Source: Paramicrosporidium saccamoebae KSL3 (lineage: Eukaryota; Fungi; Cryptomycota). Taken from it: a stretch of DNA of 19,727 nt. Every line of letters begins with the position of its first letter. The first letter of the stretch is position 1. Below the pieces are notes generated by a model. The model had not been told where the DNA came from and searched no databases. It saw only the letters and a program-made list of their open reading frames with translations. Of this stretch, positions 1,296-19,727 are shown piece by piece. The stretch is taken from assembly GCA_002794465.1 (NCBI GenBank), contig MTSL01000045.1, positions 2,389 through 22,115 on the forward strand, read 5' to 3'. The position numbers were made by a program, and so were the translations under genes.

Positions 1296-3958
1296 ATGGA
1301 GCAGGTGCAGGCTGCAGTCAAGTCGCTCCATGCACCGGGAGACGCAGCGACACAACGACACGCACTAAATTTTTTGGAACGCTTTCAAAACTCGGTAGGG
1401 AGACGGAGGGATTGACCTGTTAGGTGGAGGCGTGGGACATTTCGGTGGCAATGCTGAGACAGGGAGACGGGTCGCTGGAATGTCGGTTCTTTGCAGCGCA
1501 AACGTTGAAGCATAAAGTTGTCTCGGATTATTCACAATTGGAAGAGGGGATGGCAGGAGCATTGAAAACGACTCTGTGGGAATTTTTACGGGGAGAGCGG
1601 GGGAGGACGGTGGGAGCACAACTGGTGCTTGGACTGGCGGCGCTGATAGTGCAAACGACAGAGGATGGAAACACAGTGGGCTCTCTACTGGAAGAGTTGG
1701 ATGCAGTGCCAGAGGGAGTTTTGGGAGTGTTGGGCTGTGTTCCCGAACAGTTGGCCAACCCACTGATCCACATGACGGGAGCCCAATTGGAGAGACAAAA
1801 ACGACACTTGTTGGAGTTTAATGTGGATCGGGTGATAGCCGCAGTGACTACACGATTAACAGGAAATGAACATCGAGAAGCCCTTCTTGCCTGTCTCCTC
1901 GCATGGATTAAATACGGCCCTGCTAGTCCAGAAGTGATTGGCTCCGAAAGGATATTGAGAACGTTGCTGCAAACGCTGTTGGAGGATGTGCAAAATGAAG
2001 GGACAACCTTACGGACGGGTTGCGAGGTGCTCTGTGAGCTCTTCTTCCGTCTTTTTCAGATCAGCGACGCTCCGTCAGAGGGGTTTCTGCGGGTACTGGT
2101 GGAGGGATTGGACCGACTACGCCCCGCTCTGCAACACTTGTTAAAGACGGACGATTCTCACGACGAAGAGGAGACGTCGGCATTGGCAGTGGGACGAATC
2201 TATCTGGAGGCGGGCGAGGCCTTTCTTCCATGGATTCTCAATGATCCGCGTGCCATGCAAATTGTCCTGGAGGCAGCACTAATGTTGGCAGAGAATACAA
2301 ATGGAAATTTGAAAATGGTAGAGGCGACCTTTCCCTTTTGGAGTCTGTTGGAAGAACGTCTATCGGGAGCCAATGAAACATTACGGGAGCCATTTGTGCC
2401 AGTGTTGGAGCGACTATTCCGATCATTAGTGTCTCTCCATCTTGCTTTTCCCCTATCAGATACCATGACCGCTGAGGAACGCGATCAGTTCCGCGATTTC
2501 CGTCACGTCATTGGCGACTGTCTCAAGGACTGCACCCGTATCATTGGCTCCACTGCCGCCCTCTCCCTCATCGTCACCATGTTGAAGGAAGCCGATGTGG
2601 CGCAGTCCTGGGAACACGTGGGGGGCGATGCAAACCAGGCGTCGTGGCAGCGGGTGGAGGCTGTTCTCTTCTCCCTGCGCACCATTTCGTCGTCAGTGGA
2701 TCGACGCGAATCCGAGGCTATGCCTGTCATTGCCGCAATGCTGCTCCGTCTGGTGCAGGGGACTCCCAATCCCAAATTGGTGTATGCCGTGGTACTCAAT
2801 ATTGGATGCTATGCTGATTGGGTGCGCTATCACGTAGAATTTCTGTCGCCCTTCCTTACTGTCCTCGGTGGCAGCATTGGCGATCATCCTGCTGCCACAG
2901 CCATGGCCCTTAAATACCTCTGCCAATCCTGTGCATCGCTGATGGTTCCACACGAGGCCACTCTAAGGTCTCTGTATACTCAATCCATTGCCTGTTTGGC
3001 CGCACGGGAAATGCAAGATTTTAGCGAGGCCGTCTCCAATGTGCTCTTGGCGGTGCCTGAGGAAACTTTTGCCCATCTATTCCCGCCCTATGTTGCCCCC
3101 TGGTTGTCCCTATTGACAAGCAAACCTGCAGATGCTCTGGATAACTTGGCCGTGTTTATTGAGGTGCTGTCGCGTCCCTCCCCGGCCATGGACGCCTTTG
3201 TGGGTCAACTGCTCCCTCATCTGCCTGCGGTTGTTGATCGCAGCCATAGACACGAGCCCACCATGGACAGTCTGGTCATGTTGCTGCGTGCCGTAGTGGC
3301 TCATCATCCCAAATACAGTTTGGCATTGATGGATCTGCTCGACCTAATGTTTTCTCGACATTCCATTTCCGGAGCACTCTATGTCATCCGTCATGCTGTC
3401 ATGTGTGACCCTCCGGTGCTGCCGTATGCACGAGCACAACAATGTCTCCATTCGGCCCTGGACATTGCTGAATCCCGACCAGCGGGGCTGTCTGATCTAA
3501 TGCAGTTAGCCACCGCCATTCTCGACTTTTACACTCAATTCCTCGACGATCCCCTGTTGGCACGCGTACTGAACATGGGACAGGTGATCCTGGCTGCCGA
3601 TCCAGTGACGCCCTCTGAACTGATTGCCGCACTGTCATTTTTAGCTCATCTGCTGCAACATTCTCGAATCGCAGGAGAAGGAGTGGCCACGTGTGTGCAT
3701 GCAGTGCTTTGCGCCTTGCCCCAACTCATTCCCACAAATATTCTCCCCGATGTCGCTGCTGTGCTCCGTCGTTATTACATTCTCGATCCCGTCCGATCAC
3801 GTGCTTATTTTTCTGCTCTACTCGCTGCCCTTCCCAACCTCACTGATCGAGAGCGTTCGGTATGGTTGGACAAGTTTGGTGTGGCCGTTGAAGGTAAACC
3901 GCGTGAGATGAAGGAAATGTTGGGGGCCTTTATTGCCGTGTGTCGGCGGCGTCTTTAA
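1296..3958 (+). CDS. MTR10: Transportin-SR / importin-beta family nuclear import receptor Mtr10 (exons 1296-1394 and 1424-3958; 877 aa)
   Basis: The spliced N-terminus MEQVQAAVKSLHAPGDAATQRHALNFLERFQNS|VEAWDI fits the importin-beta N-terminal LE-x-FQ-x-S-x-EAW motif. It also has FFAAQTLKHKV, FRDFRHVIGDCLKDC, WQRVEAVLFSLR and IGCYADWVRYH, typical of Mtr10/TNPO3, in a Leu-rich HEAT-like sequence. Confidence 0.9.
1395..1423 (+). other. 29-nt spliceosomal intron in MTR10
   Basis: gtagggagacggagggattgacctgttag: GT...AG with a TTGAC branch-like motif. Removal joins exon 1 in frame to the 844-aa ORF and restores the conserved motif. Confidence 0.9.
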
Positions 3959-4346: not shown

Positions 4347-5090
4347 CTATTTTATGTATTTAAAGCGATATGCAAAAACAGTCTTCATCAGGTCTGCATC
4401 TCCTCGCGAGTTGGCCACAACCAATTCATCATATTTATGTGTCTCGACGAGAATCGTTTCCATTTGCAACTCATCCCGCACTAGTTGCAGTAGAGCCAAA
4501 TCGCGGTCCTGATACCATGGTCGGTAATGTGAGAACACACACCAAACCGTCCCTTCAGGACTCAGACAATCCTTTATGGATCGCAGCAGTTTGTAGTGTT
4601 CACTGTGGTTGAAGATGACATCACACATGATGATCATGTCAAATTGTGTGCTATTATTTTGAGATAGCACCAATGTCGAATCTGCACCCCATAGATAGCC
4701 TTTTGCTGTGATCCGTTTCTGCGCTTCCTCGTCAAGAAGACTGTCAATGTTCTTTTGAATATTCACAATCAGTTCGTTGTCTGGATAGTCCGTCACCACG
4801 ACCTTGTGGGCTCCAGCCTCGGCAGCAAGAATAGAGGGCAGACCTGCACCGGCTCCCAATTCCAAAATTGTCTTTCCACGAAACTCGTCCGGGTGGGTGC
4901 AGATATAGTCGCTTAGCCAGTGGGCTCCGTTCCACAGATAGTTTGCCCAAAGGACATGGTGTCCCACCACACACACCTGCAGCGTATCTCCCGACGGTCG
5001 AGTGTAGTTGATTACTTTTTCTGCAGGATGCACTATCCTTTTCTCATCCTCTGCTTCCACAAATAGGCCTCCCAGCTCGGAGTCACTCAT
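4347..5090 (-). CDS. EFM7: Protein N-terminal and lysine N-methyltransferase Efm7/Nnt1 (class I SAM methyltransferase; 247 aa)
   Basis: VVGHHVLWANYLWNG, GKTILELGAGAGLPS (SAM motif I), VVVTDYPD, GYLWG and DVIFNHSEH match the Nnt1/Efm7 family. The start is placed at the ATG at 5090 (MSDSELGGLF), because the ORF-track extension is translated intergenic repeat. Confidence 0.88.
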   Translation of the reverse strand: MSDSELGGLFVEAEDEKRIVHPAEKVINYTRPSGDTLQVCVVGHHVLWANYLWNGAHWLSDYICTHPDEFRGKTILELGAGAGLPSILAAEAGAHKVVVTDYPDNELIVNIQKNIDSLLDEEAQKRITAKGYLWGADSTLVLSQNNSTQFDMIIMCDVIFNHSEHYKLLRSIKDCLSPEGTVWCVFSHYRPWYQDRDLALLQLVRDELQMETILVETHKYDELVVANSRGDADLMKTVFAYRFKYIK

Positions 5091-5209
5091 TCCAACCAGC
5101 CAGCCAGCCAAGCAAACCCGATAACCCAAGTAAACCAGGTAATTCAGATAACCCAGGTAAACCAGACCAACCAACCAACCAAACCAACCAGATAAGCCAG
5201 ATAAACTGT
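5091..5209. repeat. Low-complexity spacer: degenerate 9-bp units (gataaccca/ggtaaacca) plus (ccaa)n and (ccag)n
   Basis: gataaccca agtaaacca ggtaattca gataaccca ggtaaacca followed by gaccaaccaaccaaccaaacc. It fills almost the whole gap between two minus-strand genes. Confidence 0.8.
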
Positions 5210-6802: not shown

Positions 6803-7387
6803 TTATTGCTTGTGGTGTGCGCCAACAGCAAATAACATGTCATCTTTGGGTACTTGAAGCTTCTTTAACGCAATTGAGGCCTTTCTTTCTTCCGCCACCA
6901 GCAGTTCTGGTTTCAAGTTAAAGTTTACTGGGTTTTCAATCGCTTCCCTTATGCGCTGGTCAAGATTTTCTTTTGTAATCATTGTGCCTTCTAGCTGCTT
7001 ACTGAGCATGGTAATTTGCTTTCTCTTCATCACCTGAACCTGCACCAGTGCCTTTGACATGTTCTCTACACCTTCCAACCTCATCTCTTGGCTTTTTATC
7101 ACTCGCCTCACTGGCCTACAGCGATGTCTATCCCTTGTGAGATCGGAGGTTGGATCATTCAGTTTTGTCCGCACACCCTCCAAATACTTGTTCCATTCGG
7201 CATCTCGCTTCAAGGAGCGTGTCTGACGGTCGGCAGCCTGTTTCTGGGCTCTTGTTGGAACAGCAGCAAATTCTAAGCGGTATTTTTGACGAGTCTTGCG
7301 GAGGGCTGTTTGATACTCTATTAGCTCGGCATTGCGGGCCGCACTTACCCCGCGGAGTGTGGAAAAGAGTCTGCTGAACCCGGTCAT
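6803..7387 (-). CDS. MRPS26: Mitochondrial small-subunit ribosomal protein mS26 (MRPS26/Pet12-like; 194 aa)
   Basis: The ATG at 7387 gives a mitochondrial-presequence-like start, MTGFSRLFSTLRGVSAAR. YQTALRKTRQKYRLEF and MITKENLDQRIREAIENPVNFN resemble the mS26 motifs (FITRENLEARVEAALD-x-x-x-NYN). Confidence 0.75.
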   Translation of the reverse strand: MTGFSRLFSTLRGVSAARNAELIEYQTALRKTRQKYRLEFAAVPTRAQKQAADRQTRSLKRDAEWNKYLEGVRTKLNDPTSDLTRDRHRCRPVRRVIKSQEMRLEGVENMSKALVQVQVMKRKQITMLSKQLEGTMITKENLDQRIREAIENPVNFNLKPELLVAEERKASIALKKLQVPKDDMLFAVGAHHKQ

Positions 7388-7469
7388 TCCAGAATCCACA
7401 AAGTAATTTAGTTTATCTTTTTCTATTACATAATACTGAAGTTTGCAATCGTCTCCCATTGCTATTGAA

Positions 7470-8471
7470 TCATAGCCCAAAATGCTCATTTTCAACCTGT
7501 GCCCTCCGTTTAATGGACGGTTGACCACTGATGAAATAGTCAAACGCATAAATACTGTTGTTCATCACCTTGGGGACGTGCTCCAGGCCTTTTGACAAAC
7601 ATTTCATCATGCCATATCTTCCAACCGACGCATCGGCCGCATGCATAAAGCTAATGTTTGCCGCATTCTCTACAACTCTCCAGCCATTCTCAAAGAGCAG
7701 CAGGAGGATATCGGCAATAGGCATTGCTCCTTCCAGCGGCTCCGCAGGAAATCCAAATAGAGAAAACATGGCAATGTTATCTACCACCCAGAGCATCAAG
7801 AAGCGCAAAACAGCGTGCTTCGCCAAATATAGGAGATCGTGAAGTAGCGGATAATTGAGAGAGAGCAAGGCGATGCCCTGCATGATGAGCGCCATTTGCT
7901 GTTCCTCGGGGAGGTTGGCTGGAACTGTCACTACCTGTCCGAACAGGCTGCCATGAACACCATAATGCGATCCGCTGCGTAGGGACACTGTCGGGTAGAC
8001 TGGATTTTCGATGGGGACACCCATGTTTTGAAAGACAAATACTTCTGCAGCCTCCATGCCCACAAGAAAGACAATATCCAATATAAGAAATACCCCAAAA
8101 GTCACGAGTCTTTGGTGTTTCATCGTAAAGTGTAAAGCCATCTCAAATAACAAACTGTTCACCACGGTGACAAGATAGAAATACAGCCCAAAGGATGGAT
8201 CGGCAAAAAAGCCGAGATTGGCTATCACGTCCCAACCTACCACAAAAAGCAAAGTCCCATGCTCCAGTCGTTTGCAATACCTCCAGCACCTCCCCAGCAT
8301 TCCAAATGCGAGACAAAAGATGGGGAGCATATTATTCCACAGCGGGACGGCAAGACTCTGTAATGCAAACCTGACCGTTTTTTCGTCGGCCGAGTAGAAG
8401 AGTTGTAGCCCAACTACCAGTAGATACGTCACCATACACAGCGCGAATGACAAGAGAAGGATTTTCTGCAT
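7470..8471 (-). CDS. Divergent Ste24/ZMPSTE24-like (peptidase M48) multi-pass membrane protein lacking HExxH; probable pseudoprotease (333 aa)
   Basis: It has several TM segments, and the order of motifs follows Ste24: DEKTVRFALQS...LW...FGMLGRCWRY; SLRSGSHYGVHG; LPEEQQMALIMQGIAL at the HELGH position; FSLFGF; ISFMHAADASVGRYG at the RRFEFQADAFA position; SGQPSIKRRA at the SHPPLLERL position. The start is set at MQKILLLSF; an upstream in-frame extension to 8603 exists. Confidence 0.55.
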   Translation of the reverse strand: MQKILLLSFALCMVTYLLVVGLQLFYSADEKTVRFALQSLAVPLWNNMLPIFCLAFGMLGRCWRYCKRLEHGTLLFVVGWDVIANLGFFADPSFGLYFYLVTVVNSLLFEMALHFTMKHQRLVTFGVFLILDIVFLVGMEAAEVFVFQNMGVPIENPVYPTVSLRSGSHYGVHGSLFGQVVTVPANLPEEQQMALIMQGIALLSLNYPLLHDLLYLAKHAVLRFLMLWVVDNIAMFSLFGFPAEPLEGAMPIADILLLLFENGWRVVENAANISFMHAADASVGRYGMMKCLSKGLEHVPKVMNNSIYAFDYFISGQPSIKRRAQVENEHFGL

Positions 8472-8620
8472 TTTAGAGAGTATAAGCAGCGATTGCGTTG
8501 CGGCTAGGAAGCTGTGTTTGCCTATGGTTTGTTCTACTGCCGCACATAAGGCGTATGTGGAAGTGGCACGTGATTCCCCTGCCGATTCACTTTTAAAGGG
8601 CACTGAAAGATGTTAAAATT

Positions 8621-8805
8621 TAATAGGGTTAGCGAGCGGATATGTATACAGAGCCTAATAGTCGGCTTGAATATTACTCTAATAGGGTTAGCGAGAGGAC
8701 CCAGACACAAAAAGCCTAATGGCTGACTTGAAGATTGCTCTAATATGGTTAGCCAGAGGATTCGGACACGAGAAGCCTAATGGCCGACTTGAAGTCTTAT
8801 TACTC
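8621..8805. repeat. Three degenerate ~60-bp tandem units in a divergent intergenic region
   Basis: Units are 8621-8679, 8680-8740 and 8741-8805. They share taatagggttagcgagagga...agcctaatggc-gacttgaa-attactc, with a more variable 11-13 nt middle. Confidence 0.88.
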
Positions 8806-8908
8806 AAAATGATGGTATGATTGGTATCTTAACTAGCTCTAACCTCAACAATATAGCTGTTGGTGGGTTACGGAAATTAAATACATTTCATTTCGGGCCT
8901 TGGTTGCA

Positions 8909-11506
8909 ATGACAAAGCTCATAGTCGGAGTCTGTGCGATGGACATTAAGGCACGCAGTAAGCCCATGCGACACATTCTGGACAAGCTGTTGTCGTATGG
9001 AGAATTTGAAGTCATACTGTTTGGAGACCACGTTATCCTTGAGGAATCCGTTGACCATTGGCCATTATGCGACATCCTACTGGCCTTTTTTTCGCGCGGC
9101 TTTCCCCTGGAGAAGGCAGTAGAGTATTGGCGACTAAGGAGACCATTCTGTGTGAATGATTTGCTGTTGCAGTATGTGTTGTTGGACCGACGACTGGTGG
9201 GACAATTACTGGATGCCAGTGATGTGCCCACGCCCAACCGACTAGTAGTCAATCGGGATGGCGGCCCTACGCTTCCAAGCGAATTGGTGGAGTTGATTAG
9301 TCGGGACTTTAATATTGACTTGAGCAGTTCAGCCCTCTTCCCCCAGCATAATGTCCGGATGTTGGATGCAGACACGTTGCAGGTCGGTCGACGGATCCTG
9401 CGGAAGCCGTTTGTGGAAAAGCCCGTTGACGCCGAGGACCACAACATTTACATTTACTATCCACGCAGCATGGGCGGTGGATGCAGAAAACTGTTCCGGA
9501 AGGTGGCGAACAAGTCGAGCGAGTTTTGTCCAGACGTGGTGGACATTCGGATGGATGGATCCTACGTGTATGAGGGCTTCATGCCGGCCGAGAATGCTGA
9601 AGATGTAAAGGTATATACGGTGGGACTGCATTATGCTCATGCCGAAACTAGAAAGTAATTCATGCGATAAATACTGACAAATAGGGCGCCGGTGGTGGAT
9701 GGCATTGTGAGGAGGAATGCAGAGGGAAAGGAAATTCGGACAGTGGCCGAAATGACGTGCGAGGAACAAGAGATTGCGCGCCGAGTGTGCATGTCATTTG
9801 GACAGACGATTTGTGGCTTTGACATTGTGCGGTCGGGGGGAAGGTCGTTGGTGGTGGATGTGAACGGATGGAGTTTTGTAAAGGGAAACGAGAATTATGT
9901 GGAAAAATGCGCAGCAATTCTGCGAGACACGTTTCTGTGTGCATCCGTCTCCAAACGCCACTCATTGGGCTGGAAATATGAGCCATTTCCCTCGGCAACT
10001 GAGGGACAATGGCGACTAAAATGTTTTGTGAGCATTTTTCGACATGGCGATCGGACACCAAAACAAAAGATCAAGATGACAGTGCGGCATGCGGCATTTT
10101 TTGAATTGCTGCCAGCTGATTATGGGGGCGAAGATGTGATTATTCGGGAAAAGGCATTGCTGGTAAAGGCATTCAATATCTCGGATCGGGTGTTGAAGGA
10201 AACGAGTCGGGAAGAGGAGGATTATGTGCGCCTGCAACAGCTGGTGGAGGTGCTGGGGAAAAAGATGCGGGTGCTGGGAACGAAACTGCAGCTACGCAAG
10301 ATCCGCACCAATGATCCGCAGCCGAGTATGCTGCTGATCATTAAATGGGGTGGCGACTTTACCCACGCGGGACGACATCATTCCAAGGATTTAGGGGAGA
10401 ACATGCGGAAGGACTTGACAATCCTTAATCGGGCGCTCCTTGACGATGTACGCATCTTTTGCAGTGCAGAAAGACGAGTGATGGCCACGGCCGAGGTATT
10501 TGCCAAAGCGTTCCTGTCCACGGCCGAAGTGGCGCCCAGTTATGTGACGGTGCTAAAGGAGGCATTGGATGACAGTTTCGTCTCCAAAGACGACATTGAG
10601 GCAGTGAAGAAACGCATTGGTCAGCGTCTATTGGACGATTCTAAAAAGGACATTTCCGATGATCCGACTGTCCATTTGGGACGGCTTAAGGAATGTCTGC
10701 AGATGCATCGAACAATTATGAAGAGAAAGTTGGAGACGGCCGATCTTGAGAACATCCGATGGTGCTGCTCTGATTCGCTAACGCTGTTCCGAGAACGATG
10801 GGAGAAGCATTTTGGAGATGTTTTGGACAGCAGCGCCGAATGGTTTGATCCGTCCAAAATATCTGATTTGTATGATTCGCTCAAATTTGATGCATTGCAT
10901 CACCGGGACGTCCTGGAGATGCTGTTCACGGACGATGATCCAATTAGCGTTACAGCCCTGCACGATCTATATCTGATGGCGCATAAACTGTTTGACTTTG
11001 TGGCGCCGCGAGAGTACGGCAGTAGCGCGGAGGAACGACTGCGGATTGGACGACAGATCAGCGGACTGATTTTGCATCGTGTACATAGCGATATTTCGGC
11101 AGCCATTCTCTCTGCCACCCCCAGCACCCGACTCTACTTTACAAAAGAATCACATATGACGGCGCTATTGAATATACTGCGCAGCTGCGGCTTGGCGTTG
11201 CATCCCACAGAGTCACTCGAGTTGGATTATTTGTCCCACATTTGTTTTGAATTTTATGAACGCGATCGGGGCGGCACTCCACGCTATTCTCTGCGGATTG
11301 GATTGTCACAGGGAGCCCATTCCACCCGTCTGCTTGATCTACAGGTGGATGCACGACACGCCTTGTCGGTGAGCAGTCGTGCCTGGCTGACCGACTATTT
11401 GGAGGGAAGGGAGGCGTTGGAGGTTATTTGGGGGACAGTGGAGGGCAGCGAGGAAGACTATCGAGACATGAGAGGGGTTCGAAAGTCATCTGAGCCGATG
11501 ATATAA
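8909..11506 (+). CDS. VIP1: Inositol hexakisphosphate / diphosphoinositol-pentakisphosphate kinase Vip1/PPIP5K (exons 8909-9654 and 9685-11506; 855 aa)
   Basis: The N-terminal ATP-grasp kinase has GVCAMDIKARSKPM, KPFVEKPVDAEDHNIYIYYP, EDVKVY, HAETRK|APVVDGIVRRN and VVDVNGWSFVK. The C-terminal histidine-acid-phosphatase-like domain has RHGDRTPKQK and YFTKESH. Confidence 0.96.
9655..9684 (+). other. 30-nt intron in VIP1
   Basis: gtaattcatgcgataaatactgacaaatag: CTGAC branch; it carries an in-frame TAA. Removal restores ETRKAPVVDG. Confidence 0.93.
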
Positions 11507-12045: not shown

Positions 12046-13132
12046 TCACATAAAAGACCACAGGGCGGCAGGGACGGGTAGCCAATCGTCTTCCAGAGAT
12101 TCGGTACTGTTGTCTTCATCATCGGCCTGGCCCTCCCATTCGCGCATTTCAGGCTCAGTTTTCCTTCGGCCTATTCCCTCGGGCATGGCAGCCAACATAC
12201 AATTAGCAACGGAACCGGCCCGGAAGGCGCCAGTGATGTGGGTGACGCTATTGCGCCGTCGACGAAAGGCGTCCAGGGGTATACGTCGCTGGGGAGGCCG
12301 CGAATCGGGGGCGGGCGGAGAGGTGGAGAGAATCATGGCCAACTTTGCAGTGTCCATCAGCTCCTCCAAACGCAGACAATTGTCCAATCCGGGATAATCA
12401 TCCACGTGGTACACTCGATGGGTGGGAATGACGGCGGGAGCGGTGCAGACGCTGCTCTTGGCGGCCATCGAAATGGCAGCAAGAATCTGAGGCGTAATCT
12501 TGGCAAGTTGTTCACTCAGTGTCTCTTCTTGCGTCTTGGAGACGCACATTAATGGTTCCATCTCCAAATCCTCTTCTTCGCTGCTGCTGTCCGTGTGGAG
12601 GAACAACGACTCGATGGCAATGTCTGAGCCGCTGCTGTAGCCGTAGTATTCGGCAAACAGTTCCGTGTCATCCACACAACTGTCTTCCTCGGAGAAGTAG
12701 TACTCTGAGAGGGCAAATTGCGCATCCAAGTCGCCTGAAACTGTAAAGTGCCGGTCCACATGAACCTTTTCCTTCCTACACGGCTTTTTGCCCTTTTTCT
12801 CTCCTCCTGCTGCATCGTGAACACTATTGGGAGATTGTACCTGTGGTTTTGGCAGTCTTGACTCCACGACTACCGTGGAACGTCGCCGAGGGACGTTTGC
12901 GCGGCTTTGGCGACTTTTTAATGTGCAGTTCGGTCTGTCCCGTGCAGGAACAGTCGTCCTCGCAAATGGGACACAACATTTCATCCACCGAGCGACGTCG
13001 TGGCGATTTGGTGGGCGACATACTGTCGGCTCCCGAAGTCTCTCCTGCACTATTAATCCACCTCAAATATGCACCTCTGAATGTTCTTCGTGGCGATTCT
13101 CGTGCTGACTCGCGTATAGCTTCTATTCTCAT
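12046..13132 (-). CDS. Hypothetical, probably nuclear and largely disordered protein (exons 13132-13075, 13044-12841, 12809-12046; about 341 aa)
   Basis: A 31-nt intron joins ORF 12824-13219 to ORF 12046-13050 in frame (KTT|AGGEKKGKK). The product has CPICEDDCSC, Lys/Arg-rich NLS-like tracts, an acidic Ser/Asp/Glu tract and RRIPLDAFRRRR. The start codon and first intron are uncertain. Confidence 0.65.
12810..12840 (-). other. 31-nt intron (hypothetical gene)
   Basis: gtacaatctcccaatagtgttcacgatgcag: it contains the TAG ending the upstream ORF; a phase 1 join links the two ORFs. Confidence 0.7.
13045..13074 (-). other. Putative 30-nt in-frame intron (hypothetical gene)
   Basis: gtgcatatttgaggtggattaatagtgcag: TTAAT branch at the usual spacing, but stop-free and 3n, so retention cannot be excluded. 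Confidence 0.45.
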
Positions 13133-13570: not shown

Positions 13571-13702
13571 TACCATCACCATTATTACTCATTCGTTCAT
13601 TATATGCTATAAAGCACAGTACAATACGGTACATTAGAATCAATACTACAGACTTTATCCTATCCTAAAATCCTGTTGTTCGGTTTTGATTGGCGGGAGT
13701 GG

Positions 13703-14728
13703 ATGCTGCGCGCCAACAATGTCGACTTGTCCGGCATCGAACAGTATTATTTATGGCTGCAGAGAGTTTATTTTAGGTTTTTGAGGGAGAACAGCTTTAC
13801 TCCCTTTGAACGGGAAGAACTTCCGGTCCACAACTCTACACCCGCTCCGCAGGTGGAATTTGAAATTAGGCACACGCGCGAACACTTGGAGAAACTAAAG
13901 TTCAACTGGCTGGAACTCCACACTAAACGCGGCTTTCTAAATCGTCTGGGAAATGCAGAAGAGTGGCGAGCCTGCCAACTGACCCGTTGGACGCCGGGCG
14001 AATTGAAGCAGCTGGAGCATGAAATGGAACCCAGCAAATCCGTCTTGAAGGCCGAAAAGACCCGCACGTTGGAGCTGCTTCGGGTGCTAGAGGAGAAATG
14101 CGAGGCTGTCCTGGGACTGCAGAATTCGGTGCAGGAAAAACACGACGAGACGGACGACCTGCTCCGTCGTTATAGGGAGGCGGAGGAGACGCTGCAGGAT
14201 CTCAAACTGTCAGTGCCCGATGTACCAATGCGGTCGATGGAGGAGGTTCGGGCTGTGTTGGACGAACAGAGCATTACATTGGAGAAAAAGTCTATTGCCT
14301 TGGAGCGACATCGGGGGGCAGTGGAGGATTTGGAGCGTCTCTTGTCAGTGCATGAGGCTGAAAATGCCAAACTCATTGGACTGCAAGCAGAGCTCGAGAC
14401 AAGACGGACAGCCTTGGTAGCGGAACAGGCCAAGGGCGACAATTCATTGGGCGTTCTTTGTCGTTGGTACGCCTCGGCGGTGGAGACGCTCGTCCGTCTG
14501 AGCGGCTGTCGGGTGGAGATGGTGCAACCCGACTATCTGTTGGTGACGGTGGTTACGGTGCCGGTGCACATCCATGTGGACTTGATGACTGGAAAGCTGC
14601 GCAGTGTCAAGGTAGGGACTACCAGTTCCACACCAAAACGCCAATGGAAGGAGTTGGCCGAGACGGCCGTCGAGTTTAATGACATTCCCTTTCTGTTGCG
14701 TTCCATTCATGCAGCGGTCAATAAATAA
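13703..14728 (+). CDS. Sos7-like (Zwint/Kre28-equivalent) kinetochore protein (341 aa)
   Basis: REHLEKLKFNWLELHTKRGFL resembles the Sos7 signature (F-S-K-L-[KR]-F-S-Y-x-E-Q-x-T-K-E-x-F-L). A long coiled coil follows, then a C-terminal WY-containing alpha/beta RWD-like segment. The start is set at the first ATG (13703). Confidence 0.62.
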   Translation: MLRANNVDLSGIEQYYLWLQRVYFRFLRENSFTPFEREELPVHNSTPAPQVEFEIRHTREHLEKLKFNWLELHTKRGFLNRLGNAEEWRACQLTRWTPGELKQLEHEMEPSKSVLKAEKTRTLELLRVLEEKCEAVLGLQNSVQEKHDETDDLLRRYREAEETLQDLKLSVPDVPMRSMEEVRAVLDEQSITLEKKSIALERHRGAVEDLERLLSVHEAENAKLIGLQAELETRRTALVAEQAKGDNSLGVLCRWYASAVETLVRLSGCRVEMVQPDYLLVTVVTVPVHIHVDLMTGKLRSVKVGTTSSTPKRQWKELAETAVEFNDIPFLLRSIHAAVNK

Positions 14729-14948: not shown

Positions 14949-16079
14949 TCAGATATGAAGCGACTCCATCATTTTGTTTAGTTGGTGCGGTTTGAATAGC
15001 TCGATTGCTTCAGCTAGCTGCATATTCCTGGCCGAATTGGTGGCCAAGATTTTGTCAGACAACACCACTCCCAGATGGAAGACGGCAAACAGGATAAAGT
15101 CCAACTTTTCTGTCTTGACCCATTTGTCAATCACAACGGGACTGGGATGTCGGAAACACTTTTTCCAGGCAAATCGGAGAGTGCCTTTGGCAATGGCATC
15201 GCCTTTTTCAAGGAGAGCAAAGCTATCCAGGCTGATCTGGCCAGGACAGTAGTTAAAGTACTTATTCAGCTGCCACAAGGGGACCGTGTTTGAAAAGAAA
15301 ATAGTCTCCAGGGATAGATTGCTGGGAGTCATTCCGTACAGACGACAGACTCTCCGGGTCATGTGGATGCCAGTACTGCTAGTAAGCGCATCAATGACAG
15401 CTTGGGATGGTTTCTTGTTCGTCACGGCGCGTATGGCGCGGAGAACAGGATATTCCTTTTGCAGAACAATCCGATTCAGTTGGAATTTAGATGGTCTAAA
15501 TTCACAGTGCTTCAATCCCACCTGAAGAACAGATAGCATCCCCTTTAAGGCTGCCGAATAAATTAAACCGTCGGATGGACAAATGTCGTGGAGGCTGGCA
15601 GCGGCCTCTAAAAGTGCAATATCACCTATCTGTGCCGCGTGATCAACCGCAGCATGGCATTTCGATCGCCCATTATTCTCAAATTCCTCAGAGTCTAGTT
15701 CGTCGTCAAATGACACCTTGTCGAAAAGGTAATAAATTACGTCACACGTTCCAAACCAGTCATTTTCATAGACTTCCTCAACGGTTTGCTGGGTAGGCCC
15801 AATTTTACTCATCAGTAATATCCGAACGCGTTCCCCTTCACTGTCGCTATTGAAAAGTTGATCATGAAGACTCAGATCCAACTGTTTCTGGTGGTCCTCG
15901 GCTGTTTTGAGACGTTTCGCAGCCACTTTGTCTTGCCTCGGTGAGCTTTGGGCGTCAGAGGACTGCTTGCCTTGTAGTTTTGCACCTTGGACACCAAAGA
16001 GGCCTAGGGAAAATAGCCCCCCAAACAGGGGACCGCTACATGTTAACCCGCACAAAATTATTCTGAGAAAAGTGTTCAT
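14949..16079 (-). CDS. Hypothetical protein with a hydrophobic N-terminus and 28-aa degenerate ankyrin-like helical repeats (376 aa)
   Basis: Long uninterrupted ORF. From the ATG at 16079 it reads MNTFLRIILCGLTCSGPLFGGLFSLGLFGVQG. PS dipeptides recur at 28-aa intervals. Confidence 0.75.
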   Translation of the reverse strand: MNTFLRIILCGLTCSGPLFGGLFSLGLFGVQGAKLQGKQSSDAQSSPRQDKVAAKRLKTAEDHQKQLDLSLHDQLFNSDSEGERVRILLMSKIGPTQQTVEEVYENDWFGTCDVIYYLFDKVSFDDELDSEEFENNGRSKCHAAVDHAAQIGDIALLEAAASLHDICPSDGLIYSAALKGMLSVLQVGLKHCEFRPSKFQLNRIVLQKEYPVLRAIRAVTNKKPSQAVIDALTSSTGIHMTRRVCRLYGMTPSNLSLETIFFSNTVPLWQLNKYFNYCPGQISLDSFALLEKGDAIAKGTLRFAWKKCFRHPSPVVIDKWVKTEKLDFILFAVFHLGVVLSDKILATNSARNMQLAEAIELFKPHQLNKMMESLHI

Positions 16080-16185
16080 GTAAACCTGAAAAAACAGCCC
16101 CCGGCTCACTCTAACCGTGGTTCAATGGCTACGCTCGAGATATATAGAACATTTGTACATATGGAACTTGTGATGGCTTTAGCTG

Positions 16186-17779
16186 TCAGTATCGCGGACG
16201 CTGAGACTGAGGATCATGAGGAGGGATAGGACGTTTTGGGGCCTGCGGTCTCTGAGGGGATCCAAACGACCTTCCACTCGGAATAAACATTCCACCAGAT
16301 GCATGAGCCGGGATAGTAGCAAAGGTTGTGGCCGTCATTAGGGATGGTGGCACTTCCCTCATCACTCCAATAGCATTAGGATTGGACACGTCGGCCACAC
16401 AGTTGTTGCCTTCGAGGGCCATTTGTCGTTTGAAATGTTCCACAAAGATTTCAGTGAGCGGCATAGTTGGTAAGACAATGTGGTGGGTGGCAAGATCGCC
16501 CAAACATGGCTGTGTACCTATCCTTAACACTGCCTCAAAACGCACCCCACGTAAGGGATTAACAAGAATGTGCACTGTGAAATGACGGAAGCGTTCTTCC
16601 CGTTTCTCCTCAAAACGCATCGTCCGCCAAAGTGCCACCGGCGGATGCAACCACGAAAGAGTGGGTGGGCTGCCAAGTTTCAGACGGGACGGGTCCTTGC
16701 GCGCATCCAATCCGTACATTGGTTCCATTCCACTGCCCGTCTTTCGCGTCCGATGCTCCTCTGCCACTGACATTATGCGGAACCGGGATTGCTGCACATT
16801 TTGTTTCAGACGACATCGCTGTAGGAACGCATCGATTCGCGCCGTCCGGGTGATTTCATTCTGCAGTAGATCCTCTGCACTCTTTTTTCCATGGTCTGCA
16901 CTCACGCTCATTACGTGTTCCTGCAGATTGGCGCCAAACTTTTTGGCATCATAATTCAACCTTGTCATGACCCGGGACACCATGGGATTAGGATCGAGGC
17001 AGATGGGTGCATTAATCATCATCTAAAAATAAATAAGCTCGGAAGTATACCAAAATGCGGCTTTCAATGTCCAAGGCCAGGTCAGCTGACGCCGCCAAAT
17101 GGCCCATCTCCTCCCGAATAAAGTTGTCCACATCCTTTTGAATAGTAGCCGAGTTGGGCTTTAGCAGGATTTTGTGCATCTCGGGGGCTGTTGCAGAGGC
17201 GCTGGCCAGCATTCCCACTTCTGGCGACCGTGGAGCTGCCATCACTCCAAACGCCCATCGACGGTAATCGACAATTCCAATCACAGCACATCCATCGTAC
17301 AGCAATGCTCCACATTCTCGCAGCTTTTCCAGCAGAGGGAGGCCGAGTACTTGTCCATTAATACAACGCACCAACTCTCTCGCCACCGGGTGCGACAACG
17401 GAAGCGGTCCAATGTCACCCGGCTCTAAAACCAATGAATCTTCAAAAACGGCCACCACCAACGACGGAGTAATGTCCCGAAACCTTTCAATTGCCCACAA
17501 ATTGGTGCTAAACAAAGAGTTTGGTGTGGTTATGTTGGATGTGTTAGTTGCGGTGGTTATGTTGGGTATGGCTGCACTAGCCGCGTTTGTGCCAGTCGTA
17601 GAGTTACGACGGAGAAGAGTCCCGTGTCTGAATTCCGCCAGTCGACGTTTTAACGGTAGACGATGCGGGAGCACCTGTTCATCACCCGTCTGTTCCATGC
17701 GCCATCGCTGAGCTAGTGAAGGAAACACTGCACTATCCAAAAACGATATTGTCTCGGCTATCAGACTATCAATCTCCAT
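16186..17779 (-). CDS. SPT20: SAGA complex subunit Spt20 (exons 17779-17051 and 17022-16186; 521 aa)
   Basis: PSLVVAVF, LYDGCAVIGIVDYR, KILLKPNSATIQKD and IESRIL|MMINAPICLDP fit the Spt20 domain. WRTMRF...FVEHFKRQMALEGNNCVAD resembles the C-terminal conserved region of Spt20. Confidence 0.85.
17023..17050 (-). other. 28-nt intron in SPT20
   Basis: gtatacttccgagcttatttatttttag: the phase 0 join restores ESRIL-x-x-x-x-x-P-I-C-L-D-P. There is no canonical YTRAY branch motif. Confidence 0.85.
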
Positions 17780-17894
17780 GCCCTGCTTATGCGACGAAAC
17801 GAAACGAAAAATACAAATCATTATTTTAACTTGCAAGCTACTGTGAGAGTACTGCGAGATATAGTTACAATCGCTATTGCTACATCATAGCCAG

Positions 17895-18315: not shown

Positions 18316-19727
18316 TTATAAGGCCAGAAGCAAAACCATGATTGCCAGCAATATTCCCAAAAAGGCGCATGCAAACGCACGATTAGAGAGGGGCTGACTG
18401 GCCCCAGTATCAACCAGTACATTGGCTTGCACCCGCCTTTTTGGGATGTAGTCAAAAAAGTTTGATGTGGCTAGTAGTTTGCTCAAGGCAGCTCCGGGCT
18501 TGAAAAGTTTTGACGCCTCCAAAGTGGATAGTGGATGCGTTTTATACGTGTGCAAGAATCTGGTAGCCCACAGCCTGGTGCTGGCGCGGTCTAAAAACAC
18601 TCCCTCGGTGGACCATCGTCCTGCAGATGTGTATAGCTTAACAGACTCTTCAACGAGACATTCTACAGTATCACAAGCAGTACTGGGAAAATTGATGAGG
18701 CCAGGCAAATTGGTAAATGCGGGAATGGCGTGTCTAAGATCGCCTCTGTAATCGCCCCAAAACTCTTCCGCCTCCTCCACTGTACTGATAGACGTCGGCC
18801 AGCGGATTCCGCCAAAGTTTTGATGTAGAAAGATAGCCCACGGTTTGACTGCCTGCATACATCCACCCCAGATGCTGGCCGATGAAGGTGCGAAGTCTTG
18901 GGCATATGTCAGTCCTCTTGCATAGTCACCGGTAAGATTCGTACCCAAATGTAGGTTTTTGAGGGCCAGAACTTGCACTATTTTCTCCAAATACATGGGT
19001 GGAATCAGTTCTACACTATATGCAGTCAATAACCATCTCACCAGCGCTATCGCGCGTAACCTCCCTGAAAGAACTTGGACATTTACTTTTGGTAAAGACA
19101 GGATGCTGTAGACAAGACGCGCGTGCCAAAACGCCAAAATCTCTGGTCTCTTGGCAAAGCATTCAGAGAGTTCCAAGTACAGATGGGTATGAGCAGACAT
19201 AGGATCTTCCCCAAACAAAAGTTTAATGTTCACTGCAAATTGCCCATTTCCAATATACCTTGCTGCCTTCTCCATCGCGAGTCTGTCAGTATCGGACGAA
19301 GAGGATGGGTCCATAAGTGAAATTATCGCGAGTTTTTGGTCTCCAGTGTCTTTAGAGAGATCCTCCCACGCATCCTCAGCGTTCCAATAGAGGTCCGTGC
19401 TGTGTGTTGGTATCCTTCCAATACGAGATTTTAACATTGAGGGACGGCTTATTAGCATTCTAAGTAGTCTGTCCCGCAATCCAGTGGGGATTGTTTCAAA
19501 TTGGTCCTCGTCATACTCAATATAGCGAGGCATATACTCTTCATATCTGTCAGCTAGTAGCTTATAAAGATGTGGCTCACGGACGACAAAGAATACTGGA
19601 AACAAAAGGGGATGAAGCTGTGGGTTGTCAAAGTATCCCTCAAATAGTGCTGCTGCATCACTGTGAGATAGCGAGCGGGTATAAAAGTCGTCTTTTGCGG
19701 GGAATGGGTCTGTGCTGCTCAAAATGC
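18316..19727 (-). CDS. Hypothetical protein with a C-terminal hydrophobic anchor (GPI-signal or tail-anchor-like), partial (5' end outside the window)
   Basis: The frame is open to the window edge (at least 469 aa). It ends in TGASQPLSNRAFACAFLGILLAIMVLLLAL* with no cytosolic tail. Confidence 0.75.
   Translation of the reverse strand, partial: ILSSTDPFPAKDDFYTRSLSHSDAAALFEGYFDNPQLHPLLFPVFFVVREPHLYKLLADRYEEYMPRYIEYDEDQFETIPTGLRDRLLRMLISRPSMLKSRIGRIPTHSTDLYWNAEDAWEDLSKDTGDQKLAIISLMDPSSSSDTDRLAMEKAARYIGNGQFAVNIKLLFGEDPMSAHTHLYLELSECFAKRPEILAFWHARLVYSILSLPKVNVQVLSGRLRAIALVRWLLTAYSVELIPPMYLEKIVQVLALKNLHLGTNLTGDYARGLTYAQDFAPSSASIWGGCMQAVKPWAIFLHQNFGGIRWPTSISTVEEAEEFWGDYRGDLRHAIPAFTNLPGLINFPSTACDTVECLVEESVKLYTSAGRWSTEGVFLDRASTRLWATRFLHTYKTHPLSTLEASKLFKPGAALSKLLATSNFFDYIPKRRVQANVLVDTGASQPLSNRAFACAFLGILLAIMVLLLAL

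Follow-up and report, generated by a model that had tools for sequence, protein, structure and literature searches.

Ste24 and ZMPSTE24 are zinc proteases with an intramembrane chamber (MEROPS M48A; Pfam PF01435 and PF16491; structures 4AW6 and 4IL3). Polytopic protease scaffolds that have lost their catalytic residues are known from the rhomboid superfamily, in which iRhoms and Derlins are kept for binding or escort in membrane-protein quality control. The active site of M48A follows the formula HEXXH + E + N + H (PMC7804941), and Ste24-dependent quality control at the translocon has been connected with the Derlin Dfm1 (bioRxiv 10.64898/2026.07.01.735875). ZMPSTE24 has a protease-independent, IFITM-linked antiviral activity (PMC5379977) and has recently been described as binding a topological isoform of IFITM3 (PMC13579940). 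Here we describe a gene for a 333-residue polytopic membrane protein at 7470..8471 on the minus strand of a 19,727-nt stretch of nuclear DNA (the window) from the amoeba parasite Paramicrosporidium saccamoebae (Rozellomycota; GCA_002794465.1, contig MTSL01000045.1), a source confirmed by the 100% protein match of the public model PSACC_00463. Full-text literature searches (Ste24 pseudoprotease, M48 non-peptidase homologues) turned up no report of a Ste24/M48A subfamily missing its zinc site, as a preliminary description of this DNA had supposed.

Together with two orthologues, P0002 and P0003, the 333-residue protein forms a family that resembles Ste24/ZMPSTE24 in its predicted build of five transmembrane (TM) helices, a small β-sheet, two long helices, and a C-terminal helical cap. 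It has collinear remnants of the SxR, FGF, AD, and xP....R motifs, and its C-terminal half aligns profile to profile in one register (P ~7e-4). Unlike Ste24/ZMPSTE24, the window protein has 333 rather than 450-475 residues, a shortness remarked on from the start, and is without the L5D helix and the long loop of ZMPSTE24 (283-325). In the family, HExxH, the third-ligand Glu, and Asn265 are absent, as is His459 from all but one member; searches with Pfam and HMMER give no match, and an acidic stripe of the family's own runs along the TM7-like helix. We put at about even the chance that the 333-residue protein is a strongly diverged, catalytically dead descendant of Ste24/ZMPSTE24 (M48A). Homology of the family to Ste24/M48A as such, judged from the sequence comparison, appears moderately probable.

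If this kinship holds, the family would resemble iRhoms and Derlins in concept, as a membrane protease scaffold without catalysis under selection. In fold and catalytic class the two would be unrelated (serine rhomboid against gluzincin), and iRhoms and Derlins are ancient and widespread, whereas the family is known from three closely related lineages only. The antiviral role of ZMPSTE24 offers a second parallel, in which a Ste24 scaffold is able to act without catalysis; there, however, the active site is kept and the non-catalytic role is additional, whereas in the family the site is gone.

Architecture of the membrane protein

The coding sequence is a single exon with an ATG at 8471 and a TGA at 7472-7470, lying in an open frame at 7470..8603 (-) that the list of open reading frames (ORFs) and the sequence count as 377 codons from an upstream GTG. 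The full-length orthologue P0003 (337 residues) starts with MRKLLLILFTLCM, aligned opposite MQKILLLSFALCM of the 333-residue protein, which shows the ATG at 8471 to be the true start. Hydropathy reveals at least six hydrophobic segments. Five long helices are predicted (2-26, 42-66, 71-90, 95-119, and 122-149), followed by three short strands within 164-184, helices at 189-231 (~43 residues), 233-238 (6), and 245-286 (42), and three further short helices. The six-residue helix carries FGF and connects the two ~42-residue helices. ORF, hydropathy, and predicted secondary structure thus agree with the multi-TM protein first described. The 333-residue protein is an integral membrane protein of ~7 helices, fast-evolving yet under selective maintenance.

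Profile-profile alignment with Ste24

The M48A profile was composed of six vertebrate ZMPSTE24 sequences and 79 Ste24-like proteins from bacteria (identity 30-37%; HExxH present in every one). The bacterial ORFs were chosen by phmmer guidance, and yeast Ste24p (4IL3) was added in later runs. The human ZMPSTE24 query was checked against structure 4AW6, and the best 120 matches of the Ste24 search were all vertebrate.

Unaided, the Viterbi path of hhalign places family residues 163-325 on ZMPSTE24 258-467, with Q198-G-I-A-L202 on H335-E-L-G-H339, M276 on E415, and Q317 on H459. The same register had been proposed from a manual alignment, so that its collinearity with Ste24 is now recovered by an independent method, although only modestly beyond chance. 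The C-terminal halves (family 151-333 against ZMPSTE24 241-475) align with a score of 29.7 (P=7.6e-4, probability 25%), compared with null scores of 14.6 ± 3.0 for full-column shuffles and 18.6 ± 2.8 for shuffles of 8-column blocks (z=5.1 and 4.0, respectively); none of the 150 shuffles of either kind reaches 29.7. The reversed family query scores 11.5 against the Ste24 C-half. Pairing opposite halves as TM-rich cross-controls gives 10.9 for the family N-half with the Ste24 C-half and 14.4 for the family C-half with the Ste24 N-half. Over the full length the score is 26.6 (P=0.011), a value reached by 1/100 column shuffles and 3/100 block shuffles. Global mode returned a nonsensical end-to-start alignment of the family with the Ste24 profile.

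The register is unchanged across template sets, with P falling from 0.04 (vertebrate-only) through 0.0017 (bacteria-dominated) to 6.9e-4 (combined with yeast Ste24p), indicating that the signal rises with profile diversity. When single sequences were ranked against the Ste24 C-half profile, the window ORF came first and the ORF of the orthologous locus L002 second among 100 ORFs, both in the same register. Adding predicted secondary structure lifts the hhalign probability of the halves to 58%; the full-length value is then 35%. HMMER gives fainter traces of the same comparison: hmmsearch with --max and Z=1 yields E=0.003-0.03 across the FGF..AD region, and the Ste24 hidden Markov model built here gives ~1-5 bits on family proteins with filters off.

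Secondary structure elements of the C-terminal region, predicted for the family and for ZMPSTE24 from separate alignments, match one to one. Three strands are predicted in each. These are followed by helices at ZMPSTE24 326-367 and family 189-231 (42 vs 43 residues), 370-375 and 233-238 (6 vs 6), 383-425 and 245-286 (43 vs 42), 428-441 and 288-297 (14 vs 10), 447-457 and 304-315 (11 vs 12), and 460-468 and 319-330 (9 vs 12). The ZMPSTE24 helix 233-243 and long loop 283-325 are missing in the family, which explains part of its shorter length.

Residues at the zinc-ligand positions

At the position of the HExxH zinc motif, which begins TM6 in Ste24 and was assigned by the hhalign path and the family alignment, the window protein reads Q198-G-I-A-L202 (7866..7880, -), and its relatives read HGMAL and HDLAL. 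In the order window protein, P0002, and P0003, H335 reads as Q, H, and H, the catalytic Glu E336 as G, G, and D, and H339 as L in all three. Further downstream, F275-M-H-A-A-D280 (7632..7649, -) lies on F414-E-F-Q-A-D419, with M276 (7646-7644) at the third-ligand position E415, which is V in P0002 and G in P0003. G316-Q-P-S-I-K-R-R323 (7503..7526, -) lies on S458-H-P-P-L-L-E-R465, with Q317 (7523-7521) at H459, which is H in P0002 and T in P0003. These five Ste24 residues are 100% conserved in 85 reference Ste24 sequences, except H459 at 99%. The motif coordinates first reported (QGIAL 7880-7866, FMHAAD 7649-7632, and GQPSIKRR 7526-7503) are exact. The accompanying statement that every catalytic residue is replaced stands for P. 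saccamoebae but not for its relatives, both of which keep the first His, and one of which keeps the C-terminal HP.

Around these positions, non-catalytic remnants persist. The FGF of ZMPSTE24 (F376-G-F378) corresponds to F239-G-F241 (7749..7757, -), which is family-invariant and lies where a short helix or loop links TM6 to TM7. R323, equivalent to ZMPSTE24 R465, is likewise invariant. The AD of ExxAD retains A in all three members and D in two. Ahead of the pseudo-active-site helix, the predicted β-strand region S163-L-R-S-G-S-H-Y-G-V-H-G174 (7950..7985, -) lies on the substrate-binding strand 'SKRSSHSNAYFYG' of Ste24. S163 is present in 2/3 members and R165 is R/R/K; ZMPSTE24 N265 and A266 are lost, the N265 position being Y/F/H in the three members.

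The second His of HExxH and the third-ligand Glu are absent in all three lineages. With neither an intact HExxH nor a third-ligand Glu in any member, the family, if Ste24-derived, cannot be a normal zinc protease, and with no member able to bind zinc canonically, the loss would be older than the split of the three lineages. Clade-wide loss of catalysis, as expected of a pseudoenzyme, would thus be in place if the alignment is homologous. The other mark of a pseudoenzyme, an intact ORF under purifying selection, is observed directly. A frameshift or splicing error masking a true HExxH, raised earlier as a way in which a correction might restore the motif, was rejected: three independent assemblies read QGIAL, HGMAL, and HDLAL.

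An unrelated orphan protein as the alternative

Several results weigh against kinship with Ste24, and most of them favor the principal alternative, namely that the family is an orphan, lineage-specific polytopic protein unrelated to M48, whose resemblance is due to chance or composition and whose "lost" residues were never catalytic. A match to an M48 profile, implied by the preliminary description, did not materialize at the HMMER level. Pfam-A hmmscan at E<=10 reports no family, including Peptidase_M48 and M48_N, for the window protein, its C-half, P0002, or P0003. Searching the PDB by sequence and by profile with the membrane protein returned nothing, and BLASTP against human ZMPSTE24 is not significant (best E=1.3, in the N-terminal region). 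A profile search of 1.84 billion representatives, exhaustive for that set, provides no link to any M48 protein and yields only the three family members. When HMMER ranked 100 local ORFs, the L002 protein came first and the window ORF fell outside the top 8. What signal there is comes from profile-profile comparison (P ~1e-3, probability 25-58%), with a probability spanning 4-58% by set-up. This comparison set the family against M48A profiles, and a better match in another family is possible.

The comparison itself carries further points on this side. Shuffles of 25-column blocks, which keep true local motifs, reach 29.7 in 2/150 cases, and scores of this kind are inflated by the composition of membrane proteins. 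By hhalign, similarity between the N-terminal halves is not significant (P=0.18). Of 25 aligned Ste24 columns with >=90% conservation, only three (A418, L435, and R465) are kept in all three members, and 9/25 are kept in at least two; the family, if a Ste24 relative, is an extremely eroded one. Conservation within the family is highest in the acidic stripe at 247-269, for which Ste24 has no counterpart motif. The Ste24 idea was formed by eye on the same sequence, which makes the P of ~1e-3 partly post hoc, and the function of the 333-residue protein is entirely inferred.

Structure prediction adds no usable three-dimensional model. The AlphaFold2 model from the three-sequence alignment has a predicted local distance difference test score (pLDDT) of 38.6 and a predicted template modeling score (pTM) of 0.27, and a Foldseek search of it against the PDB gives noise, with nothing at E<=0.001. 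Because a ZMPSTE24 control folded in the same way from 14 vertebrate sequences reaches a pLDDT of only 44.7, the poor model says nothing against Ste24 kinship. From that control model, only the secondary structure string was used. Folding with a mixed family-plus-Ste24 alignment was rejected as circular.

Against an orphan origin stand the register that hhalign found unaided (P=7e-4, z=4-5 against composition-matched shuffles), the climb of the score with a more diverse Ste24 profile, and the top ranking, in that same register, of two members only 41% identical to each other. The TM-rich cross-controls score far lower, and six secondary structure elements agree in order and length. On balance, we regard an orphan origin as a real possibility that falls short of even.

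Family-specific residues and a possible rebuilt active site

The TM7-equivalent block (7665..7733, -) is the most conserved of the family, as defined by invariant columns. Residues 250-274 (7650-7724), mostly within it, have 60% invariant columns. An invariant acidic stripe at heptad spacing (E247, D254, E261, and E268) runs through this region together with the invariant W264, R265, and N269, and all of these residues map to Ste24 TM7 positions that are small or polar. HxxxH (H169 and H173; 7953-7967, -), located in the region of the predicted strands, is also family-invariant. Neither the stripe nor HxxxH has a Ste24 counterpart, and either may represent a new functional surface.

Such residues could be read as a rebuilt active site, in which a Ste24-derived protein remains a hydrolase that uses the H169/H173 HxxxH, H211, H219, E247, D254, E261, and E268. 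In favor of this reading, members with 43% identity share several invariant His, Glu, and Asp residues, 2/3 members retain the zinc motif's first His, and the strongly conserved 250-274 block points to a specific functional surface. However, no known M48 or gluzincin enzyme functions without the second His and the Glu ligand (formula in PMC7804941), about one-third of all columns are invariant with only three sequences, which makes invariance weak evidence, and clustering of the candidate residues has no structural-model support. We consider retained hydrolase activity quite improbable.

For a catalytically dead Ste24 descendant, the mechanism that we propose is that an ancestral M48A intramembrane-chamber zinc protease lost zinc binding and catalysis in this family, and that the Ste24 membrane-barrel scaffold was retained and would act by binding rather than cutting. 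By analogy with other membrane pseudoproteases, polypeptide segments that are hydrophobic, prenylated, or engaged with the translocon may be held or escorted by it, or it may serve as a partner subunit. A location in the endoplasmic reticulum or nuclear envelope is assumed on the same grounds. The acidic stripe on the TM7-like helix (E247, D254, E261, and E268) would be the candidate for a new functional surface.

Orthologues and selection

The membrane protein has only two orthologues among ~15 billion public proteins. The exhaustive HMMER profile search of the 1.84 billion cluster representatives returned P0002, P0003, and one spurious repeat protein, P0004. This bacterial protein of 4,320 residues (E=4.8e-12, 29 stretches) owes its match to family positions 268-309 to repeats of the form ...ANSTVGAYTVEASV... 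and was rejected as a repeat or low-complexity artefact, not a relative. Neither a word-indexed search at E<=10 with the profile of the three sequences nor two metagenome DNA scans brought in further members. The family is limited to Paramicrosporidium-like Rozellomycota, from which three lineages are known.

At the DNA level, the orthologous loci are L001, a JGI metagenome contig with 69-70% identity to the window protein, and L002 (Logan DRR438482), a full-length ORF with 41-43% identity by alignment used. Gene order is kept in both, with a divergent PPIP5K gene, the membrane-protein gene, and the gene for mitoribosomal protein mS26 in succession. Compared with L001, the ratio of nonsynonymous to synonymous substitution rates (dN/dS) is 0.15 (Nei-Gojobori, 281 codons; dN 0.17, dS ~1.15), and the differences at codon positions 1/2/3 number 58/42/111, with the third position dominant. 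Three independent assemblies carry the ORF at full length, beginning at the same position and ending almost at the same one. An intact ORF, purifying selection, and three full-length, syntenic lineages show that the gene is not a pseudogene, in agreement with the earlier claim of an intact ORF.

Identity to L001 and L002 is 70% and 41% for the membrane protein and 85% and 48% for mS26; that of PPIP5K is 77-86%. The membrane-protein gene evolves at about the rate of mS26 and much faster than PPIP5K. This fast evolution relative to PPIP5K is consistent with relaxed catalytic constraint.

The weakest alternative, that the gene is a pseudogene in decay or an artefact of annotation or assembly such as the 3' part of a larger spliced gene or a frameshifted Ste24, could appeal to the way PSACC_00463 takes only residues 139-325 and splices them to mS26, but it is scarcely credible given the dN/dS of 0.15 with dominant third-position changes, the full-length ORF in the three assemblies, the separate stop of the gene in relatives with mS26 beginning 45 to ~380 bp later, and the conservation in P0003 of the 138 N-terminal residues omitted.

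Implications of a possible non-catalytic Ste24

If the kinship is true, the family would represent a natural experiment on the Ste24 membrane chamber without proteolysis. It would bear on the debated protease-independent roles of ZMPSTE24 and give the membrane pseudoproteases, which are known from the rhomboid superfamily, a gluzincin case. The reach is limited to three closely related uncultured or obligately intracellular organisms, with homology resting on a P of ~1e-3.

Should a canonical Ste24 also be present in the genome, the 333-residue protein would be a dead paralogue; otherwise an orthologue would have lost catalysis, which would be more surprising. A search of the genome paper's supplements and of the literature turned up no Ste24 or M48 listing for P. 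saccamoebae. We think it unlikely that the gene is the sole Ste24-derived gene of Paramicrosporidium, a near-universal orthologue turned into a non-catalytic chamber with an acidic binding surface on TM7. If so, the family would constitute the first "dead Ste24" subfamily in nature, and the organism that carries the gene would be a eukaryote living without Ste24 proteolysis.

Public gene model and the neighboring mS26 gene

The public model PSACC_00463 (L083, 3001-4255; window span of the fused genes 6803-8471, -) is chimeric. It takes the internal Met139 (8057) as its start, omits the first 138 residues of the membrane protein, and exits the ORF after ..RRAQ via a predicted 61-nt intron (7496-7436) into mS26 (PF14943), so that only residues 139-325 of the membrane-protein ORF are counted as coding. 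The skipped N-terminal region is the one conserved in P0003. The membrane-protein ORF of either relative ends at a stop of its own, within a few codons of the same position, and the spacer to the start of mS26 is ~380 bp in L001 and 45 bp in L002. Because the relatives end the membrane-protein ORF separately and mS26 starts independently, 7470-8471 is a separate single-exon gene. The error in PSACC_00463 keeps the full membrane protein out of sight in protein-database searches.

The gene for mS26 itself lies at 6803..7387 (-), encodes 194 residues, matches Pfam MRP-S26, and has its own stop and start in the relatives. Read from 7387, it equals the L001 mS26 in length and shares 85% identity with it, so the true mS26 coding sequence is most likely 7387-6803.

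Other genes and features of the window

Divergent from the membrane-protein gene, PPIP5K/Vip1 (8900-11506, +) contains PPIP5K2_N and histidine-phosphatase domains in two ORFs split by a ~30-nt intron at ~9655-9684, with strong intron signals (GTAATT ... TACTGAC ... ATAG). The same two-ORF split in L002 makes the intron position look conserved. Between the two divergent genes lies a tandem repeat at 8652-8794 (unit 61 bp, 2.3 copies, 82% matches; region 8621-8794), which contains three copies of a 20-nt core, TAATAGGGTTAGCGAG(C/A)GGA, at spacings of 59 and 61 bp. Given its position between the divergent genes, the repeat could be a promoter element.

Four ORFs of 278-468 residues, all on the minus strand (12046-13050, 14949-16109, 16186-17022, and 18316-19722), have no Pfam match. 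The named remaining genes encode an importin-13/transportin-3-like protein (1424-3958, +), a Methyltransf_16 lysine methyltransferase (4347-5174, -), V-ATPase subunit G, which has introns and lies between the Methyltransf_16 gene and mS26, the kinetochore protein Sos7 (13676-14728, +), and Spt20 (17012-17836, -). These are ordinary eukaryotic housekeeping genes.

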